A stretch of 60,056 bases of DNA, counting the filler, from Bipalium vagum (Eukaryota): NCBI GenBank assembly GCA_037834085.1. It is 3 parts of 3 records of this genome, joined end to end, with 100 filler letters (N's around TTAATTAATTAA, not from the genome) between each part and the next. Parts side by side here need not be neighbours in the genome. Positions count along the whole stretch, not along the records: positions 1 to 20,642 come from JBBMKC010248621.1; 2 more parts are not named here. The stretch is one strand, 5' to 3'. This document shows, piece by piece, positions 3,791 through 20,642 of the stretch (positions within the stretch are counted from its first letter, which is position 1; each line of letters opens with the position of its first letter). The position numbers and the translations under genes are program-made. Below the pieces are notes generated by a model. It had not been told where the DNA came from and ran no database searches. It worked only from the letters and a program-made list of their open reading frames with translations.

Positions 3791-5272
3791 TTTTTAATAA
3801 TATACATTGCTGTTTTAATCAAAGAGCTTAATTTTTCATTTTACATTGTTGTCGACCAATGCATTTCGTACACATGCTTTAATAAACAATTTGAACTTTG
3901 AAAACTATTTATTAATATTAAAAAAAATTTAATCTAACTACGATTGCAAAATATTATATATTTGTGATATTCGAAAACAAACAATAATTGAAACTAGTTT
4001 GATAATTTATTATTTTAAGTTAAATAATTAATTTTTAAAAATAATTGTTAATAAAATTAAATATTTGTAAAGGAATTTTGATAATGTAAAAATATTTTTC
4101 TTGCTCAGTCTTTTCTTACGCTTATCAGTCAACTCCGACATGATTTCGTTCCATCAAGTGTCTCTCGCTTAATTGTGCCTATTTTCTTTTCTTTTTTTTT
4201 GTTTTTCGCTCTATTTTTCAATTCCGACTCGTGCATATGTGCCAAATAATTTATTTTTACAATACAAACCTAATTTATCACATTAAACCATATATAGGTA
4301 GGGAATCGTCAATATTATAAATCAGAGTTTTCGTTAGTAATAAACGACCATTATCGTTGTTAATATCAATCGGTTTATAGTCAGAACTACAAGTCATTTT
4401 TGAATAGATTTATTAGGTGATAAAACAAATAATATTTAAACAAATTTTAGGTTAGGATGTAAATCTCTGGTTGAACATATTTTATTAAGAATGATTCGCA
4501 AATCTTTGGTTCACCAATTTTATCAAAATTGGTCGTGATCACTCTAAATTCTTGATTATTAACTTTACTTTTTCGTCTAACGAAATTCATTTAATCGTGT
4601 AAGACTTTGTTAGTTCTGTTTAATCATGAATGCTCTCCAATATGTGTATTGCAGAAACATATCTTTTTTGTTTAATAACGAATGATTAGAAAAAACAGTT
4701 GTAGGACCTTGGGATCTCCATTTCAACAAAAAATGATATGAGTTGCAGAATTTCTATCATTTTGAGATTATTGTATCGCACACGTATTTAACAATATATA
4801 ATTCAGGAACGAGTCTGTTTTGATTTTAGTATTTATACTTACAAAATAATATCATATATGTATAAAATATTCTATTTTTCAAAAATAATTGATTACAATT
4901 TCTAAAATATATATATTGTGATTTTCATTATAATCAGAATTTTTATAGTAATTATCATTCAATATATCTTAAAGCATATTATATATTTTTTCATTTGAAA
5001 GTTTTTGAAATATTTAACCAAAAGCAAGGTTACTTTTTATTTGCTATTTATCTATCAATTATTTTGACATTTTTGATTTAGTCAGCAGTAAATTTAATCT
5101 TGATTTTTAAAATAAAATGTTGTTTTACTATTGTTTTTATTTGAAATTATTATTTTAAGGTTAATATATTTAAGGCTTTTTTATGAATATAACACAGTGT
5201 TATTAAAAAATATAAACTAGTTAAATCTTATAATTTATTTTTTGTTATATTTGCCAAATAAATAGTAAATTA

Positions 5273-8200
5273 ATGTCGAAAAAGCATAAGTGCAAATTAA
5301 AAAGCTTACCAAAACGTAATTGCAAAAATCAGAAAGTTAGTCTGACATTGCGTAGAAGTCGGCGAAACGTTAATTATGATGATAATAAATATGATGCTTT
5401 GGAATACTTAGATGAATCAGAAAATTTGAGTGAAACAATTGAAATCAGTAGTGAAGACAGTAAAGAAAAAAAAGATCTGGAAGAAAATCACATAGAAAAC
5501 ATAGAAAGTGGATGTAGTTCTGATGTTGTAATATTGGAAGGTACTAAGCCTTTGTTTGAATCTATAAGTATATATTTTAATAATAATTGTAATATTTTTG
5601 ACAACACAACAGACGAAACCGTTCTCAATGAAGATTCTGGGATGAGAATTGTTAAATCAAAATCTACAACTAATAATAGTTTAAGCAGTGCTGTAAGTTT
5701 TTCGAGCTCCGAAACAAGATCCAGTCGAAGTGCAAATCAAAACCGGAAGTCTAAAAGAATTAGGAAATCTACAGTAGTACCTGTTTCAGAAGAAATATTT
5801 TATGTTGAGAAGATTCTTGATATGAAGATTGAGAATGGAAAAAAGTTATTTTTTTTAAAGTGGGAGGGATTTTCTGATTCTGAAAACACATGGGAGCCTG
5901 AAGAAAATATACAATCCAATATAATGGTGCAGGTACTAAATTATATATTTAAAAATAATGCGATAATTATATAAATATATTTTGTAATCAATATTTTGAT
6001 ATTCGACATAACAGGTTTAGTAAATCTAAATTCTTTTCATTTTGTGATATAATTTTATAATTGAGTTTCTTTATAAATAATGAAATAATAATTTTTTATC
6101 TCACTTACAATTTAGTCTCAGTATAATTCGAAAATTTTTATTGATATTTTTAAATGATTACAAAATTAAATAAATGAATGGTTTAATATAAATATGTTAA
6201 ATGACAGTAAATACTAAATGAACATAAGGACCAAAAACTAAGATACCGGGAAATTCTAAAGACTTGTAATCACATTGACTAAAATTTCGTAATAAAGAAA
6301 TATGACGTAACTATTTTATTTATTGAATGAGATTTTAAAAGTTTATCCTGTGTAAAATAGGTTTTAAAATAAAATCAAACAAAAAAGTTGACAGTTAACA
6401 ATTTTTTATGCTTCTAAATACAATTTCTGTTTTTGGAATTTAAAATGATATCCGATGATTTTAAATTTATTTTTGGATCGATGACTTTGAACTATTGATA
6501 ATGAATTCATTACAAAAAACCAATATTAACTAATGGAAAAACAGAAAACAGTTCTGTACTTTTAAAATGCACAGATATTTTATTGTTCATTGAACAAATT
6601 CAATTTGTTTGGATCTTTATATATACGAGGGGTGTTCTTTTCTGTTTATTTTGTATTACAAAATACAATTTATCGACCGAAAATATTGATTTATAAGTTC
6701 TCGATGTATTTTTCTTCACACTTATTCTATTCATTAAAATCAATCTTTTAAGTTTTCTATTTCATCCTAAAATGTATTTCTCAGTTCATTGATTGATTTA
6801 AAACGTAAGCCTTGAAAAGTCTTGGAATTAACATGGAATCATTTTTACAAATAATTAATGTTTTAGTATTCAATTATTAAATATATTGAATTTCTGGGTG
6901 TTTATGATCTGTTCTTGAAAGGTTTTCGAAAATTTGAGGCAAAACGTTTTTTACTGAGCCTATGATATAAGGGATTAGTCTGTCTATCTCCTGCTAAAGT
7001 CGTTTTCATCTCGAATTCAAATATTAAAAAAGCTTATCAACTATTTGTATGAAAAATTCTGTTCATTGGTTCATAGCCACATCATTACCCGTCAATTATA
7101 TTAGAAAAAGAAAGTTTTTAGCTATGGATGTTTTAAGATTAAGATCTTGAATTATGCAATTATGAAAATTTTACAATGTTCAAATTCATTTTAAAGCAGT
7201 TTAAGGAACTTATACAAAGTAGTATTAGAAATGACGAGTGGAACAAGAACAGTCCCTGAATTTGTAAATTTTTGAAATATTCATTTGTGATATTGAACTG
7301 TAATCCATTTAATTTGAACGAAATGAAACTTTTGTTTTGACAAGTTTAATAGTCACACGAATCGGTAAAATTAAATTGATCTATAATTTTTGTGTAAAAA
7401 GATTGCTTTTTAAAAAATACAGTATTAAATGCAATTTTTATACTGTCAGAGTAGTCTTGATTTTATGTTATAAAAAACAATAATTCTAGATCAGAAATTT
7501 CTTTTTTTCCATCACATTCACAGATAGGTTCTTAACATTATTTCTCACAGACATTCACATTTCGAAGGTTTAGTTATAATGTTTCTCCAATGAATATTAC
7601 AGTTGTCAGTATTGGTTTCATTTGGTTTCCTAATCATACTTAATGGTTTAAGATTCCTTGCAAATCACATTAAAAAAAATCTTAAAATATAAATGAGCCT
7701 GACAAATTTTTAAGTAAAATAATTGTGTGTATAGGTTGAAATGAATTGAAGATTTTAAAGGAAAATAATTGTAGGAATTCCTTGAAAACTTGGACAAAAA
7801 CAGTCGAAAAGATGAAAAAACCGTAATTTCGGAAGTTGATAAAAAAGATTTTTCATTTACTACGGAAACTCAGGAAAAAATCAATGATTTGAAAAATGAA
7901 GATAATACAGACAAAGAGTGTGAAGACAGTTTTGTCCAAAATTCAGAATTGAAAAAGACTGAAAACTCAAATGAAATCATAATTAATGTAGGAGAAATAA
8001 TAACAAGTGTGGATTCGAAACACGAAGAATTAGAAGTAAAGAACGAAATTCAATTCAGTAACAGCAGTCAAAAAGAAATTGAAACAGTTTTAAAAAATAA
8101 CATTTTATGTGGTGAAGATGTCGATCAAGTGAATTTCGATAAAGGTTGCAATGAAGAATGCCTTATAGAATCACAGACCTGTGACAATTTTGTTAAAGAT

Positions 8201-11200
8201 GATGTTCAAATTTTCGAATCTTCTGCAGTGTGTGAAAATCAAGTTCCGGGCAATGTGATGATCTTGAACAGTGCAATCAAAATTGATGAAATAAAAGATC
8301 AAATTCAGAGTGAAACAATGGATTGTACACTTTCGAAAGATCAAATGACAAAAATTAACAAAGTTATTAAAAAAACCAAACGAAAGGGATCGAAAATTAT
8401 AACTAGAAAATATCATAAAAGTAATAGCATGGAGGAGAAAATTCAGGACAATTTAAAAAAGGAAATTGATCAGATAATATCGAATACTTGCGGAAAATCA
8501 AGTGAAATTAATATTGATGATGATGAAAACCCTGAATCCATATCAAATGAAAATTCACGTCCACCAGACTGTCAGATATTTCCATTGTCAGTCCATTCAT
8601 CGACTGATCTGGCACCAGAAAATAATGAACAAGGCTCGTGTACTCAGTCAGTATTATCATCTAAAAAAACCAAAGAGAAAAGTTCCAAGGATCCAAACTC
8701 TTATTTTCCAAACAATATGCCACAAACAGTTCAAGAGATCTTTATGGTAGAAAAAATACTCAATATGAAAATTGTAAATGGAGTAAGAAAATTTCTCTTA
8801 AAATGGGAAGGATTTCCCGATTCTGAGAACACCTGGGAACCTGAAGAAAATTTGGAATGTCCCGAACTAATTAAGGTATATCCTAGACGAAGTTTCAATG
8901 TTTACTGATTGTGATATCATTTTAGGAATTTATCAAAGATAGAAACCAAAATAAAAAAAAGAGAAAACGATTATCATCGGATGACTCGTTGTCTGTAGAA
9001 GAGTTACCAGATGAAGTACAAATTAAGGTATTTTTTGATATTCTTTGAAATAATTATTCTACTTATTATGGATTCGTAGGAGCCAGCAGTGAAAAAACGA
9101 GGATTTCCTCGTTCTCGAGAAGCAGATTGTATTTTGGCTGCTGGAATGATGAATGATCAGTTGATGTTTTTAATTAAGTGGTTAGTTGGAGTTCTTTGTA
9201 CTGATAAAATGTATACTGATACTTGTTCTGTATCGATTTCATAAAATGACTCTAATTGGTCAAATAATTGCTATTTTAAATATATTTATTAGGTTGTGCA
9301 GTATGAAATTTCCGTTTTAATAGTATATTTTTTGGAAACGTTTTAAATCATTTAACAATTAACTAAATTTAAATATATATATAATCTTAAGGCATAGAAT
9401 TTACTGTATAATACAAAATCATATAGATATCGATTTTATATTTAAATTTTAGAATTTGCGTATAACCTTACAAACCATGTTTTTCGTGTCATTTTTTAAT
9501 GAGTGGAAAAATGGGAAATAATGGTCAAGAAGCTGCTAGAAACATTAATCATTCATTTGAAAACCATAGGTCGTTGGTTTGTCAAATTTAAATCCGGTGA
9601 TCTAAGCATGACAAACTGACCGAGGAAGACATAAAATCATCATTTTTGATAATAAATTACCAGCAGCAGTAGAATTGAATTCGAGACAGTCCGTTCGCGG
9701 ACTTTCAAAACAATTTGAGGTTTGTACCATAACAGTCTCAGCTCATTTAAAACTCATTTGTAAAGTAAAGAAGTTGGAACAATGGATATCACATTTATTG
9801 AGAAATTCTCAAAAAAATAATCTTTTGAATATATGCAAATTATTAATACTTCGTCATGAAAAAGAACCATTTTTAACTGCATCATTACTTCTGACGAAAA
9901 GCTAGTTCTTTACCATAACTGTCGACGTTCGGCACAATGGTTAAATGTGGATGAAATTCCTTCTTTTTGTCTAAAACCCGATTTGCACCAAAAAAAAAAT
10001 AATATGATTACCGTTTGGTTGTCTATGTTTAGTGTAGTACATTATTTTTTTCTAGAACCAAGGGAAACTATCACAGCAGATAAATATTGTTCCGAACTTT
10101 TAATAATAAACTAAAAATTATGTTTGTCAACAGCCTTCTTTGGTCAATAGGAAAGGTATTCTTCTGCTGCATGATAATACCTGTTCACATGTTTCTAAGA
10201 AAATGCTACAAAAGTTATCTGAATTAAATATTGAAGTTTAGAAACATATTCCATATTCAACAGATCTTGTTTCCCAACGGATTTTCATCTCTTTATGCAT
10301 TTAGCTTATGTCTTATCTCAAAAAACTTGCAGACCATGAAGATGTAAAAAAGACCATCATGCACTTCATCAATTCCAGAGGTGAAGATTTTTATGCAAAT
10401 GGAATCCGGAACTTGTAATTCAGTAGAAGAAATATTTCACAGCCAATGGCGACTATTTTATTTAAATAAAAATTATTTATTGGTACATGTTTTCAATTTT
10501 AAAAGTTATTGTGTAATCAGATATTTCATACTGGACAACCTAATATTTATATATCAGTACAGAAAGGATAGTTTCATTTTAATAATTTTTAACTTTTGAT
10601 CTTAGTTTGTGAACGATATAAAATTCTGTTGTCACCAATCTTTACAAGCATGGTATCTATAGAATTCTAGGTAAAGTATTTTCTCTAGCTGAGGCCCAAC
10701 TAAACATGTTTCATTAAGCTTAAGTAATTTCTGGAATCACTTTTTAAAATCACGAAATCTGTTTTTGTAGAACTTATTAAATATTTTCGATTTTGTTTTT
10801 CTTTTTCCAAATTGTACTTAACAAAACTTAAAAACGCTTTCATCTTGAACTCGGTTTTTCCAAATTCAAGTCAATGAAATCTTTTTCGTATTTCTTGATA
10901 TGGGTCGTACAAATTTTTTGAACTCTTCGCGAGAACTGTGGCGATTATTTTCCTTAGAAAAGTAGTATATTCAAAGTTAAACTATGGATATGCAAACTTA
11001 CAATTTCGAACTTCTATCAGTTGAGCAAAACATCACAAACTTTCTTTATACAAGGCCTAAATAAAATTTCATTTTATGACAACATTCACAAAATTGATTA
11101 AATGGATATAAAGACTGTCTATGATGAAAAGTGGTCGATTACAAACTGTGATAACTTTGTAATATGTTCAATTATACCATTATGTTTATAAATTAAATTC

Positions 11201-14200
11201 TTTTTGTCATATTATCTAAATAATTTATTGATTTTGTAGATCAATAAATATTAGCAACGAAAATGGGTAAAAAAATTGAAATGAGTTAAAAAATGTTGTT
11301 CAAATACAATCGAAATACAGTTGCTTCATATTCAACGATCACTAAGAATGTTGGAGTTGCAAAATCAGCCGTTCAAAAAGTTTTTTCAAACTACAAGGAG
11401 ACTTACTATTGAATGAAAGTCAGGTTCAGGTAAGAAAGCAGGTCAAGTTGATTTCAACTTAGCAAACGATATCATTAATGCGTTTAAGAAAAATCCGACG
11501 CTTTCAGTACGTGATGTTGCAAAAAATGTAAACATCTAAATCATACATCCACAAAAGGAAACAGAATAGAGTATTAAAGTCCGACAAAGTAACTGTTGCT
11601 TCTGATTGTGATGAACAAAAGAATAAAATTGTTAAGACCAGTTCGAAAAAGGTTTATGAAAATTTCCTTACCAAGGATGATTGAGTTATTATGGACTATA
11701 AGACTTACATTAAAGGAAATTTCAACCTATTACAAGGTCAGAAATATTGTTGCAGAAGCTAAAGACGCAGTTTCTGAAAGATTTAGGATGAAAAAGATCT
11801 CAAAATTCCCAAAGAAATACTCCATTTGTACATGTGGAAAAAAGTTTCATCAAAACTGGAACAATGAATCAAGAAATTTACATCAATGGTTGCCTTCAAA
11901 AATGATTACTGTCTTATTAATAAGCATGATTGCCTTACTTTGTTTTGACCCGATCTCTCATGCTCTCATTATGCTAAAGATACATTAGGAAAACAAATAA
12001 TTTGAAATTTATTCCTCGACAAGCCAACCCTCTTAACTGATCAGAACTCAGACCATTAGAAAAATATTGGGCAATTATAAAACAAAACTTGAATAAAACC
12101 TAGGACGCTGCTAAGAATGAAGCAGACTTTAAAAGAAGGTGGAAGAAATCAATGGACAAGGTAACTAAAATGACTGGCAGAAGTTGATGTTATGAGTAAA
12201 ATGAGGGGTTCGCGAATTTTATCCGGTTTAAGATATTTTGATAAATATCAATAGAATTTTTTTCTGTATATAATCTGTTTAAAATAAATAGTTTTATTAA
12301 AATAATTTTTGTGTTTTTATATTACTTTTATAACGACCACTTTTCATCGTGGACACTCTTTAATAAATCTTGTTAAAATACACTCCAACTTATTTCGTAT
12401 GAGATCAACTAAAATATTTTTTAAATTAAATAATGATTTTAAAAATTATTTTATTATAAATCAAATCAAAATTTTCGGTTTATATCAATTATTTATGTTT
12501 TCTAAAACAATTTTATTTATTTTATCAAGTAATTCATAAATTAGAAAAACATGACTAATTTTTTTTAATATTGCTAGGAAAAATATTGATATGGCGAATT
12601 TGGTGTCAGCTCGCAGAGCAAATATCGAATGTCCCCAAGTTGTCATTCGATATTATGAGCAACATCTAAACTGGAAAAACAACGATGATACTGTGACATC
12701 AATGCCAAAAGAAAATCTCAATGAATGTGAAAATTCCAACGCACAGAAAAATCGATTTTCCAATTATTCTACCAGTATTAAGGATTCCATTGATTATCTT
12801 GTGTCACAAATTAATGTGAAATATGGCGAAGTTAAGAAAAATACTCCAATAATTAGTAAGCCAAAGATAAAGCCAAAACCTATTGCTGTTCCTATGTCAG
12901 AAGTAGTTGGTGGAAAATCAAAGAAGAAAACCCCAAAAGCTAATAAGAGCTTTCAAGAACCAAATTCTGGTAATACTAACAATAACAGTAATCAGTCGAA
13001 ACCGCTTGTCTGTAGCAGTAGTCAAAGTATGATGAATCTCATCAGGAGCTTTAAAGATCGAAAGTCAGCAGACGTTTCCATTAAACCTCCGCAAAATAAC
13101 GTTCCAGTCAAGATCTTACAGTCACCGATACTTGACAACTGTTCCGTCAACCAAAAAGGGTATGAATCCAGAGACATTCCCACCAATGTTACGCCTCAGA
13201 AAATTGAGCTTCCGAAATTGAATACTATGTCGGTATTGAGATCAATCAATAGTTTCAAGGGAGATTTGAGTTCTAGGAAATTTGCAATGACAACCCGACC
13301 ATATTTAAGAACATCCCAGTCTTTTAACCAGCCCAGTGGTAGTACAATATCCACGTCCAATCTTAGTGTAGTATCGCAATTTAGTTCACCACATACCATC
13401 GGGAACGCACAAGCTAGTAATCTTCAGTCTATGACAACCAATGTAAATAATCTCAATTTTACAACCGCTCCTCAAAATGTTAATATTTTATCAATAAATC
13501 CATCATCGACAAATCAGCAGTTGCCCGGTTTCAACACGATTTCTTTGAACAATTTCAACGGTCATGCATTTGTAAACCAACCGAACGTCATCGCCACGTT
13601 TAATGGTCAACAGCAAATCCCATTCAATCAATACTTGCAATTGGCTCCAGATGGTGTAACTGATCAGTCTTTGCTGTCCCAGTGTTATCAGGTCGTTTCT
13701 GATCACCATACATCAGATGTCAACAATTCAATATCAACAGCTATCTTTATGTCCGCCCCTCCTCCTTCGATTCCTAGTCTTCCTGGTATTGCACAAGTGG
13801 CTCTGGGTAAATTTCCACCAGATAGTCACTTCACCGACAAAAGGTTCAAGAGTTCTATCCTTAAAAGTCGGAGCTTTACTACTACCAACCCGGGTCACCC
13901 CAACAGCGTCCGACTACCGCTCAACCAGTCTGATCCTCCTGTTGCCATTAATAGTTCTAACAATGTTATTGCCATTCAAGGTTACAACGATACACGCATG
14001 CAGCTGGCCGTCGCCCTCCAGTCTAGGTATCAACAGAATTCTCTGCTTGTTAAGCGTCCCAATACTATCGTTCCTTCGACGACAGCAACATCCGCTGCGG
14101 CTGTACACAACTCAGGGGTGATTTATCAAGGTGAAGTTCAACACCCGATCTCTCCGTATCAGTTTATTAGTCAACCGAATTTCATTTCCGGTCCAGTAAT

Positions 14201-14396
14201 TCAGCAGCAATTTCAGACCCAGCAACAACAAAAGTTTTACAATCCCCAGGATTTAATATCCCCATCATCGTCGTCCATAGGTGCAAACAATACCACACTA
14301 ATTTTGCCAAAGCTGAACAGCTTTCTCGTGTCGGGGGATGTTGGCCAACATTTACTGCAACAACAAAAACTGTCCCATCTCAATAACAACATCTGA
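5273..14396 (+). CDS. HP1/CBX-family protein with two chromodomains, a chromoshadow domain and a long low-complexity C-terminal tail (5 exons, ~1260 aa)
   Basis: Phase-compatible GT-AG exons at 5273-5932, 7775-8875, 8926-9027, 9080-9180 and 12578-14396 (3783 nt). CD1 = [31 protein letters not shown]; CD2 = [36 protein letters not shown]|EF. Hinge contains KKKRKR. Chromoshadow = KRGFPRSREADCILAAGMMNDQLMFLIKW|KNIDMANLVSARRANIECPQVVIRYYEQHLNW. Confidence 0.88.
6625..7450 (-). mobile_element. Highly decayed mariner-like remnant in intron 1 of the HP1-like gene
   Basis: TA-CGAGGGGTGTTC mariner-type terminus at ~6625; faint minus-strand LTGND.W trace. Confidence 0.4.
9289..10543 (+). mobile_element. 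Full-length decayed mariner element in intron 4 of the HP1-like gene
   Basis: 21-bp TIRs TTAGGTTGT(G/C)CAGTATGAAAT, TA on both sides, 1255 bp; ITSDEK, LLHDN and PYSTDL motifs broken by stops. Confidence 0.9.
11111..12360 (+). mobile_element. Full-length decayed maT/DD37D-like Tc1/mariner element in intron 4
   Basis: ~28-bp imperfect TIRs (AAGACTGTCTATGATGAAAAGTGGTCG vs reverse complement AAGAGTGTCCACGATGAAAAGTGGTCG), TA flanks, 1250 bp; PDLSCSHYAK and ELRPLEKYWA motifs. Confidence 0.85.
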
Positions 14397-17679: not shown

Positions 17680-20642
17680 GTAAAGTTACATTAAATAGAA
17701 AATGGTACAAAATAGTAATAATAAAGTTTATTTTAGGTAAACCAAATACATTAAATTATATTAAAAGTAACTTATAAATTGCTAAAAATAAAACAATAGA
17801 AAAAATATATAATATAAAAACACGTACCTGAAAACATAAGACACAAAAAAAATCGAAGAATCAAAAATAATCATCTCGGCAAGAACAAATAAGAACACGA
17901 GCGAGGTCATTATTCAAATTCCAAGACATAGACGGAATCAACTTACAAAAATCATTCCACAATCAATAGTATACAGAGAGACGTTTAATACCAGAAAAAC
18001 TCAGACCGAACTACGATCGTCATATAGGTGAATTTCATTAGCAAGCAGTGAACTTACTCCGACTATTAGGTGAATATTATAATTATATTGATATTATTAA
18101 TATTATAACTTTATTATATAAATATTCATACTCTGTTTGTACTGACGTATTGAATAATCGTTTAATAATTTTATTTATTACAATTTGAGCAATCTTAATC
18201 GATTGACGTAAATTCTTAAAATTAATATCTTCTAAATAAATACTCGGTGCTTCACCGTTGATTAAATAAATTTTACTGTTTTTCTTTTTCTTCTTTTTTT
18301 GTTCAAAGTTTGCACAGCCGCTAGCTGGCAAATTTCCTGAGGGCTTTAACACACTAGACTAAGTCTGTGTTTAAAGATTCTGAATCAATCAGCCTAAAAA
18401 TCTTATTGTTTACTTGTAATTTAAACTGTGTTAGAACCGATTTATCAATAAAAATTTTATTTAAAAATTTCGTTTATTTCATTGTGTCAGTGCGTTTTAT
18501 ATTAGTGCTTGAACGTTCATCCGTAAATCCTTCTGATATCACATACTTTGTTAAGTGACCTAAAAGCCCAAGTTAAGTCTTTTTAGTTTAAATCAACCAG
18601 GCTTTTAGGAACTTAAAATTTGGTGAGCCTGACGTGATCACGTTCGGAGCACTTTTCAAGTAAAATAATAAATAATAAAATCACGGCGAAAGAAGACAAG
18701 GATCAATAAATTAATTGAAACTCTTGATCTTGCAACACAGACAAATTCACCACTTTGTAAATCAAGGCAACATAAAATAGATCCTCAAACAGACAAAAAG
18801 GTTAAGCTTACACGTACACAGAATCGACAAAGAATCACAGAAACAATTGATAATTTAATAGAAAACGATATGGCAGCACGAGAGAATCAACCAAATGATG
18901 ATGAAAACCCAAGTCAAATTTATAATGGTTATATTAAAATAGATGTTTTCAGTGGGAACCCAGCAGAGTTACTCGACTTCTTAGCAAACTATTATATCAT
19001 AATGAAAGCATACGGATTCACTGAAAAAATCATGATGAACCGTTTGCCCATATATTTAAAAGGCGAAGCTCGGGATGATTATTTAGATCTAGTAGCAAAA
19101 GGTAAAAATGAAAGTTGGTTAAAAGTTAAAGAAGCATTAGGGGAAAAGATATTTACAGGCGATACAGGGCATCTCTTTAGGCAATTTGCTATTACAGTGC
19201 AACAGTCTAATGAAACTGTAGCAGATTATACTCATAAATTAAGGACCGTAGCCCAGAGAGCTATCGGCATACAAGACAATTAGGACGCAAATATACAGGC
19301 AATATTCAAAGACCACAGAAACGAAATTAATACAATGTTCGACGAAAATGATTTCAGATCCGAGGACAACACATCGGAGGTTCACGGGAGTGTAGAGCAC
19401 AGATATCCAAACGAGAAGGCTCCACTAGTTGGGGAGTTGGTGGGAGCCTTATATTAGACGTCAAGGCGAACGGTATGGATGGACAAATAGCTGAGAAGAT
19501 ATACAGGTTTGTGAAGAGGGATAGTTTCGTAGACAGGGAGCAGGTTGAAGACAAGAATATTCCGAATACACAGGTGGCCGAGATTTTATACGATCGAATG
19601 AAAGGCTGACACAGCACAATCGTGGAAATTCAAGGAATAAAATTCGATTGCTTGTTAGACACAGGGACAGTGGTAAGTGTAGTGATGGAAGTAGTGATCA
19701 ATTACGCTGTGCAAATGACACAAATATGACGACCTTAGGAAATATAAAGGTGATAATTAGGAACGAAGGAATGTACCGAGAAGTCGAATTTATTGTGGTG
19801 GACAACGTAGTACCAGGGATGATTGCAGGAATCGATTTTTAAAGGTTATTCGGATATAAAATACATTTTGAGGGAGAGAGTTCAGAATACAGCTATACAA
19901 CAGAAGCAATAAGAATCGGAGAAAATATGATAAAGACAATGGCGAGGACTTCAATGGAAATCTGTGTAACATTGAATCAAAGTTTGGAAGATTAATACAA
20001 ACGGACGAAAAAATCAGGAAAGCTTTGATCTCAGTGAGGAGAAGCTTAGATAAATTATTCAAAAATACGGAGATGCATTCATGGCTGATAAATGGGACAT
20101 TGGTCGAACACACGTCATAAAGCATGAAATCAAAAAGAAAGGAGAGCTAATCAATGTAAAGCCGTTTAGACAACCAATAAATTTAGAAGAAAATTTTGAG
20201 GAGGCCATATAAAACTTATTTGATAATAACATTATTAAGAAATGCAATTCTGCATGGAACACGCTTCTGATATGCGTGTGGAAGAATGATAAAAAGGATC
20301 TGCGACTTTGTTTGGACTTCAGACAATTGAATGCCATGACAGAAAAACAAGCTTTCCCGATGCCAAATGTTGAAGAAATGATGGATATGCTTGGAGAAGC
20401 AAATATCTTCAGTTAAATTGATCTGGGTAACGCATACTATCAGATAGAATTAGATGACGAATCAAAGGAAAAAACTTCTTTCTCTACGAAAGGTGGAAAA
20501 TCCTGTTTCAATCGAATGCCTTTTGGAATTGCAGCAGCCCCAGGAACTTTTGAGAAATTAATGCCGAAGGTCGTAGGGAAGATCAAAGGAGCATTAGTAT
20601 ATTTGGACGACATATTGATATTTTCAGGAAACAAGGAGGACC
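17680..20642 (+). mobile_element. Ty3/Gypsy LTR retrotransposon, 5' half (LTR, PBS, gag, protease, RT), degenerate and cut by the contig join
   Basis: Gag-like ORF 18870-19283; protease LLDTG at ~19651; RT motifs LRLCLDFRQLN, IDLGNAYYQI, MPFGI and LVYLDDILIFS; stops present. The LTR 5' boundary is uncertain. Confidence 0.88.
18621..18638 (+). promoter_or_regulatory. Primer-binding site, tRNA-Trp type
   Basis: TGGTGAGCCTGACGTGAT matches 16/18 to the complement of the conserved animal tRNA-Trp 3' end (ATCACGTCGGGGTCACCA); lies ~230 nt upstream of gag. Confidence 0.75.

Follow-up and report, generated by a model that had tools for sequence, protein, structure and literature searches.

A very long HP1-family gene of the flatworm Bipalium vagum with two predicted chromodomains

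Gene structure and domain content of the locus

The window analysed here, a joined stretch of 60,056 nucleotides (nt) from the Bipalium vagum genome (assembly GCA_037834085.1), carries in its first part (positions 1–20642, contig C248621) a predicted five-exon gene of the HP1 family at 5273–14396. H3K9 methylation is read mainly by HP1 proteins, and the number of readers per molecule is central to current models of heterochromatin bridging and condensation; canonical members are ~200 amino acids (aa) long and have one chromodomain and one chromoshadow domain (CSD). The gene described here would encode ~1260 aa with two chromodomains (CD1 and CD2) and one CSD. The source assembly comprises 440 Mb in 272,664 contigs, and all exons were searched, aligned and folded singly. 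The elements of the gene, with their coordinates on the window, are the following.

5273–5932, + strand: exon 1, with the arm at 5273–5782 (~170 aa) and CD1 at 5786–5932; ends ...EENIQSNIMVQ at a CAG/GT donor, phase 0
5933–7774, + strand: intron 1, 1842 nt, GT..AG, at the HP1-conserved intron site within the C-terminal helix of the chromodomain
7775–8875, + strand: exon 2, 1101 nt, 367 codons, phase 0 at both ends, with EFLENL and the linker at 7775–8719 and CD2 at 8729–8875
~8345–8464, + strand: basic patch of exon 2, in the middle of the linker
8926–9027, + strand: exon 3, hinge EFIKDRNQNKKKRKRLSSDDSLSVEELPDEVQIK, with a basic patch resembling a nuclear localization signal
9080–9180, + strand: exon 4, N-terminal half of the CSD (...GFPRSREADCILAAGMMNDQLMFLIKW), ending in phase 2
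9181–12577, + strand: intron 4, 3.4 kb, GT..AG, holding a mariner-type remnant
12578–14396, + strand: exon 5, C-terminal half of the CSD at 12578–12680 (KNIDMANLVSARRANIECPQVVIRYYEQHLNW), tail of ~571 aa at 12681–14393, stop codon at 14394–14396

Together the exons amount to 3783 nt, that is 1260 codons plus a TGA stop. All four introns are of the GT..AG type and the exon phases, computed on the window, are compatible. The borders read CAG/gtacta...tgtag/GAATTC at junction 5932/7775, AAG/gtatat...tttag/GAATTT at 8875/8926, AAG/gtattt...cgtag/GAGCCA at 9027/9080 and GTG/gttagt...gctag/GAAAAA at 9180/12578. Borders, phases and summed length thus agree with the five-exon model of ~1260 aa put forward in a first-pass annotation of this DNA. 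The domain order given there is likewise borne out by Pfam and by alignment with the orthologue described below: an N-terminal arm, CD1, a linker of ~315 aa, CD2, a KKKRKR hinge, the CSD and a tail of ~570 aa. Base composition and stop codons set the exons apart from their surroundings. Outside the exons of this contig the fraction of G and C (GC) is 0.18–0.30, and exon 5 reaches 0.42–0.43, with negative GC skew, against ~0.25–0.30 in its flanks and in the remaining gene. Intron 1 contains 47–54 stops per frame per ~613 codons, and its longest open reading frame (ORF) is at most 53 aa.

The domains claimed in the first-pass annotation were recovered by a Pfam scan, namely two Chromo matches and the C-terminal half of Chromo_shadow. 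The first Chromo match lies in ORF 5273–5974 (aa 178–216, 51 bits, 1.1e-13) and the second in ORF 7790–8908 (aa 318–364, 57 bits, 1.4e-15), both above the cut-off of 25.1. Among solved structures, CD1 is closest to CBX3, CBX1 and CBX5 (9.5e-15) and CD2 to CBX5 and CBX3 (1.7e-18). Both domains match CBX3, CBX5, CBX1 and Drosophila HP1 ahead of the Polycomb-class CBX2, CBX4, CBX7 and CBX8 and of MPP8, CDYL and Rhino, and their scores against HP1-class structures are 10 to 30 bits above those against Polycomb-class structures. On these comparisons, CD1 and CD2 are assigned to the HP1 class. In each, the F..W..F pattern aligns with the F, W and F of solved CBX3, the aromatic cage residues of HP1 chromodomains, and the earlier claim that both domains keep these positions therefore stands.

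The remainder of the product is more heterogeneous. The linker is of low complexity; its first ~190 residues are acidic (46 D+E versus 20 K+R) and are followed by a basic stretch with 14 K+R in 40 residues; its earlier description as an acidic linker holds for the first ~190 residues and fails for the middle, which bears a conserved basic patch of the KKxKRK type. The Pfam Chromo_shadow match covers positions 27–52 of 52 at the start of ORF 12591–14396 (34.3 bits, cut-off 22.4) and represents only the exon 5 half of the domain, since exons were searched separately. The sequence CPQVVIRYYEQHLNW keeps the I, Y and W of the shadow domain (...VVIxxYExxLxW), which are conserved in the Dugesia japonica orthologue and in a second gene of this genome (paralogue B, below). 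In mammalian HP1 beta and alpha these residues serve dimerization and the PxVxL groove, and the retention of I, Y and the terminal W reported at first reading can be read directly in that sequence. The tail is rich in S, N, Q and P, has no Pfam or NCBIfam match (the NCBIfam scan returned none) and contains the blocks PKEN, KIKPKP, SSSxSMMNLIxSF, YESRDI, L..IN and a C-terminal L[IV]LP, shared with D. japonica, paralogue B or both. Because these blocks are conserved in the two relatives, the tail is real coding sequence; it is probably disordered, with conserved short motifs.

Relatives of the gene and the coding status of exon 2

The only database relative of the exon 5 product in its length range is an 808-aa protein of D. 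japonica, QEP99640.1 (P0001), deposited as 'Polycomb group heterochromatin-associated protein HP1-like protein'. Its domains give no backing to the 'Polycomb group' of that name; Pfam places in it one Chromo at 181–227 and a complete Chromo_shadow at 274–325 (positions 1–52 of 52). Exon 1 aligns by BLASTP to residues 1–223 (E 3e-43), including the arm motifs MxKKxKC, TIEISSEDS and VVIL, and CD2 is 79% identical to the D. japonica chromodomain (172–223). The hinge of exon 3, which reads EFIKDRNQNKKKRKRLSS..., is 61% identical to residues 224–259, exon 4 is 85% identical to residues 260–292, and exon 5 aligns from residue 294 on, with 39% identity over 263 aa. Since exons 3–5 are collinear with consecutive residues of this protein, junctions 8875/8926, 9027/9080 and 9180/12578 are supported, as had been proposed.

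These alignments identify the locus and the D. japonica protein as orthologues. The two share the arm (MPKKRKC... in D. japonica), an HP1-class chromodomain, a basic hinge (KKRKR), the CSD and the first ~250 aa of the tail, and because they do so, arm, hinge, shadow domain and long tail are traits of a flatworm HP1-like lineage and are not specific to the window. QEP99640.1, unlike the window gene, has one chromodomain and no counterpart of exon 2, that is, of linker and CD2. Its chromodomain resembles CD1 in the first half (FYVEKIL.MK..NGKRLFF) and CD2 at the end (PDSEN...LECPELIK). A chromodomain tree built on 48 usable columns, in which 13 of 20 inner branches are unresolved, groups the CD1 domains (100/100) and the CD2 domains (92/87) in a clade each, and places the D. 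japonica domain beside CD1 on a near-zero branch (80/0). This hybrid character fits an unduplicated ancestral state, a secondary or recombinational collapse of the repeats, and a collapse during cloning or assembly (or an isoform) alike.

The B. vagum genome contains two canonical HP1 genes, on contigs C203097 and C166608, each consisting of one chromodomain exon and two CSD exons. This equals the count for Schmidtea mediterranea, where two HP1 genes, Smed-HP1-1 and HP1-2, were recorded in 2013 (PMC3639387). Both canonical genes are split after ...(CP)ELIK and after ...IKW, as are the window gene, paralogue B and a genomic contig of another species (L001, from Logan SRR33002330); because these intron positions are kept, the window gene descends from a canonical HP1. 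The giant lineage is additional to the canonical pair and has two members in this genome, the window gene and paralogue B. The parts of the latter lie on two contigs, and we infer that they belong to one gene.

C169546:1989–2627, − strand: exon-1-like arm and CD1 (45–48% identical)
C104919:15009–16073, − strand: exon-2-like, EFLGKL...linker...CD2, 355 codons, open
C104919, ~12104, − strand: exon-4-like, N-terminal half of the CSD
C104919:535–2286, − strand: exon-5-like, 584-aa ORF with shadow half and tail

A further exon encoding a C-terminal CSD half, at C239150:1027–1137 (+ strand, L020; ...VKCPQLVISFYEKNFSF), lies outside the canonical and giant genes and may represent a fifth HP1-family gene.

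Several observations concern exon 2 itself. Its frame contains no stop in 367 codons, compared with 16–46 stops in the other five frames and a mean of 32 in shuffled sequence, and it stayed open in none of 20,000 shuffles (DNA of ~30% GC). Its frame opens exactly where the AG acceptor ends, the TAG of the acceptor itself being a stop in that frame, and the codons upstream of its first ATG, which lies ~166 codons in, are all open. Its start, EFLENL, corresponds to the helix residues that usually follow the chromodomain at the conserved HP1 intron; the equivalent site after CD2 reads ELIK/EFIKDR into exon 3, and D. japonica has ELIKEFLKEQ. Comparable exons occur in L001, with AG/EFLRNLEEKEK..., a linker, CD2 ending ...ELIK/gt and then exons 3 and 4, and in paralogue B on C104919, with AG/EFLGKLEKD..., a linker and CD2 ending ...DLIK/gt. 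All three sequences are open, are 34–40% identical overall and share the invariant EFL..L start, the mid-linker basic patch K[IV].KK.K.K and CD2. The shuffling result obtained for the window exon also applies to its counterparts in paralogue B and L001. Judged from its sequence, exon 2 is clearly coding and appears designed to follow a chromodomain exon.

The end of exon 1 offers the complementary evidence. The exon 1 ORF of the paralogue on C169546 and orthologous ORFs on two contigs of other species (P0015 from ENA and P0016 from Logan) end at the GT donor of the window; in all four sequences the frame stops 4–24 codons past this common donor, and the residues read through there are not conserved. 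On the P0015 and P0016 contigs a long ORF follows exon 1 on the same strand, ~360 nt and ~75 nt downstream, respectively. Because exon 1 ends, and exon 2 begins with EFLENL, at equivalent points of the domain, exon 2 would supply the end of the last helix of CD1. The EFLENL start, the stop-free frame and the conservation in the paralogue and in another flatworm make splicing of exon 1 to exon 2 likely. The two-chromodomain architecture is apparently shared by paralogue B and by further flatworm assemblies; its presence in paralogue B would place its origin before the duplication that produced the two genes.

Wider searches added few relatives. A large profile-free search with exon 2 returned unrelated multi-chromodomain proteins as its top matches and one orthologue (P0002). 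Of two metagenome scans, the first gave no match and the second two generic chromodomain matches. A comparison of the arm with the linker of exon 2, made for signs of a larger tandem duplication, found none (best E 3.3).

Alternative readings of the locus

We favour, with a probability of roughly two in three, the interpretation of the locus as one protein-coding flatworm gene, a lineage-specific and very long member of the HP1 family, in which exon 2 follows exon 1 in a substantial share of transcripts. Several points weigh against it. The two-chromodomain product depends on the predicted splice between these exons, and no orthologous protein in the databases spans the equivalent of junction 5932/7775; the sole full-length orthologue, that of D. 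japonica, has one chromodomain and passes directly from its exon-1-like part to its exon-3-like part. A search of sequencing runs found no RNA run, and the only run retrieved is DNA-like; over 5000–9400 it yields short genomic contigs with no joints and no differences, which are uninformative on splicing and expression. Paralogue B is split over two contigs, and the ORFs downstream of exon 1 on the P0015 and P0016 contigs are assumed to be exon 2. CD1 lacks the canonical LxCPELI start of the last helix, reading IQSNIMVQ instead, and the alignments to PDB structures stop there, so that its fold or binding may be altered. Of four CD1 sequences, three keep the replacement of L(D/E)CPELI by I(Q/E/D).N.MVQ and one keeps it in part, which suggests constraint rather than decay, although the replacement could alter fold or specificity. 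AlphaFold2 models, computed from three-sequence alignments, reach a mean pLDDT (the model's own confidence score) of 41 for the exon 2 product, in which CD2 too is unfolded, and of 34 for the exon 5 product, and neither model is of sufficient quality for interpretation; low values across linker and tail fit disorder and do not prove it.

A rival reading treats exon 2 as a cassette that the main mRNA skips, the major product then being a protein of ~893 aa with one chromodomain, CD1 joined to the hinge, and the two-chromodomain form being minor or tissue-specific. Skipping would keep the frame, because both borders of exon 2 are in phase 0 and a splice from exon 1 to exon 3 is equally in frame; moreover, the single-chromodomain D. 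japonica protein has exactly the architecture that such an isoform would have, which makes the isoform possible. That exon 2 is open, with EFL..L, basic patch and CD2 kept in three diverged sequences, argues in contrast that some translation of it does take place. The LECPELIK end of the D. japonica chromodomain, furthermore, is that of CD2, where CD1 has I..N.MVQ, so that skipping of exon 2 in an otherwise identical gene structure does not by itself account for the protein. Predominant skipping is therefore a reading that we consider unlikely, while giving it real weight.

Division of the locus into two genes, with exon 1 encoding a short chromodomain-only protein and exons 2–5 an HP1 translated from an internal ATG of exon 2, would accommodate the 1.8-kb intron between exons 1 and 2, the internal ATGs of exon 2 and the lack of a transcript that joins them. 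Taken alone, however, exon 1 would continue into unconserved read-through past a conserved GT and would lack the last helix of the chromodomain, and exon 2 would carry 166 open codons ahead of its first ATG, behind an AG acceptor at which EFL..L is invariant. On the P0016 contig only ~75 nt separate exon 1 from the next long ORF, and a single D. japonica protein unites this arm with this hinge, shadow domain and tail; we regard two separate genes as very improbable. Less credible still is an exon 2 that occurs in no mRNA, being either a non-functional leftover of internal duplication or an assembly artefact. Exon 2 does partly duplicate chromodomain sequence, and the assembly is highly fragmented. 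CD1 and CD2, however, are identical at only 31 of 48 residues and 99 of 144 bases and have their own orthologues each, which argues against a duplication made in assembly, and an open frame of 367 codons, retained in three lineages, is not expected by chance.

Known HP1 systems, putative function and neighbouring elements

The locus shows the full set of sequence features of the HP1 family: a chromodomain with aromatic cage, a CSD with its groove residues, a basic hinge and conserved intron positions, all shared with canonical HP1, CBX1, CBX3 and CBX5. The short single-chromodomain architecture of those proteins is not found here, given two Chromo matches and 1260 codons with exon 2 included. 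Compared with the ~200 aa of a canonical member, the predicted product has an arm of 170 aa, a tail of 570 aa and, separated from CD1 by 315 aa of linker, a second chromodomain. Smed-HP1-1 and HP1-2 (PMC3639387) and Schistosoma SmCBX (PMC6023120) serve as canonical comparators among flatworms. Two other sources of chromodomains were rejected. A Polycomb-class CBX protein is ruled out by the CSD and by the HP1-class chromodomain scores. A chromodomain of a chromovirus (Ty3/gypsy) integrase does not apply either, since a Pfam scan of the gene found no rve, reverse transcriptase or gag domain; the long terminal repeat (LTR) element that begins at 18870 is a separate unit. An integrase of the latter kind is present elsewhere in the genome, at C231493:828–1643 (− strand, L019), where a chromovirus-type rve integrase carries a C-terminal chromodomain, in contrast to CD1 and CD2.

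The order CD1, CD2, CSD is known from the Tetrahymena protein Tcd1 (723 aa; PMC4437310) and occurs in predicted tapeworm and planthopper proteins, so that it is not new as such, and a long HP1-like protein with this kind of arm and tail was already in GenBank for D. japonica. Tcd1 resembles the window gene in placing this domain order in a long protein. Tcd1-type proteins differ in that they are ciliate and act in programmed DNA elimination; they are set apart by description, and there is no sign of common descent of the duplication. The animal cases are Anoplocephala perfoliata KAM7542277 (P0040, predicted, 377 aa) and the Nilaparvata lugens 'chromobox protein homolog 3-like' (P0004, predicted, 219 aa), with two chromodomains and a CSD each, and the ostracod Notodromas monacha CAG0918692 (P0019, predicted, 624 aa), with four chromodomains and a CSD. 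These tapeworm, planthopper and ostracod proteins have short linkers and lack both the arm and the long tail. Since their chromodomains group with neither CD1 nor CD2 in a poorly resolved tree, the duplications were probably independent. Multi-reader HP1 variants in animals seem to be of repeated origin and have been little discussed.

Drosophila Rhino (HP1D) offers a parallel of another kind, as an HP1 paralogue that was remodelled within one lineage and is expanded outside its domains; it differs from the window gene in having one chromodomain and a long hinge. Its structure 4u68 is matched by CD1 at 2e-8 and by CD2 at 6e-11, more weakly than CBX1, CBX3 and CBX5. What appears to be new at the B. 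vagum locus is the combination of a flatworm lineage of giant HP1 proteins, a second chromodomain on a linker of ~315 aa and the presence of two paralogues. A literature search found no paper describing a giant two-chromodomain HP1 of flatworms, and a search by run, assembly and protein accessions found nothing.

Should the protein be made as predicted, CD1 and CD2 would each be expected to bind the methylated H3K9 tail, because both are HP1-class domains with an intact aromatic cage. The shadow domain, as is a property of the family, would dimerize and dock partner peptides in its groove, the basic patches of linker and hinge could serve nuclear import and contact with nucleic acid, and the motifs of the tail may recruit partners. 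A dimer that includes exon 2 would then form a multivalent nuclear chromatin adaptor with four readers, two of them on long tethers, an arrangement that would favour binding across nucleosomes. A role in transposon or piRNA control would be speculation, and the transposon remnants next to the gene carry no weight in its favour.

A broader scenario can be outlined, which we offer tentatively and, taken as a whole, consider doubtful. Flatworms, or at least triclads, would hold an undescribed small clade of giant HP1 paralogues in which an internal duplication made a second working H3K9me reader on a 315-aa linker. Their dimers would act as four-reader cross-linkers with a disordered motif tail, and their specialized task, perhaps performed in neoblasts or the germ line, would be to compact or silence the very repeat-rich genome of planarians. 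A natural HP1 with two HP1-class chromodomains ~315 residues apart and a dimerizing shadow domain would provide a ready test of models of heterochromatin bridging. Planarians are a leading model of stem cells and regeneration. HP1 work in these animals has been confined to two small genes (PMC3639387), and a giant lineage with paralogues would add chromatin factors that have so far escaped study.

The remainder of the contig contains several sequences related to mobile elements. Between 2500 and 3800, GC is raised to 0.31–0.35 and several ORFs of 60–90 aa occur on both strands, one of them with ...VILDDETCVKAEF...; these ORFs gave no Pfam match, and the block may be a decayed transposon. A decayed remnant of a mariner-type transposase, with a match to Pfam Transposase_1, lies at 114–320 (− strand). 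Another decayed mariner-type remnant, at 9675–9902 (+ strand) in intron 4, is 35% identical to a mariner ORF in an intron of the paralogue, which itself matches Transposase_1; within the introns of paralogue B, a mariner transposase is nearly intact and a reverse-transcriptase ORF is present. At 18870–20642 (+ strand), 4.5 kb downstream of the gene, lies an LTR-retrotransposon-like unit that is cut by the edge of the piece and contains two recognizable parts.

18870–19280, + strand: Retrotrans_gag
20516 onward, + strand: start of the reverse transcriptase

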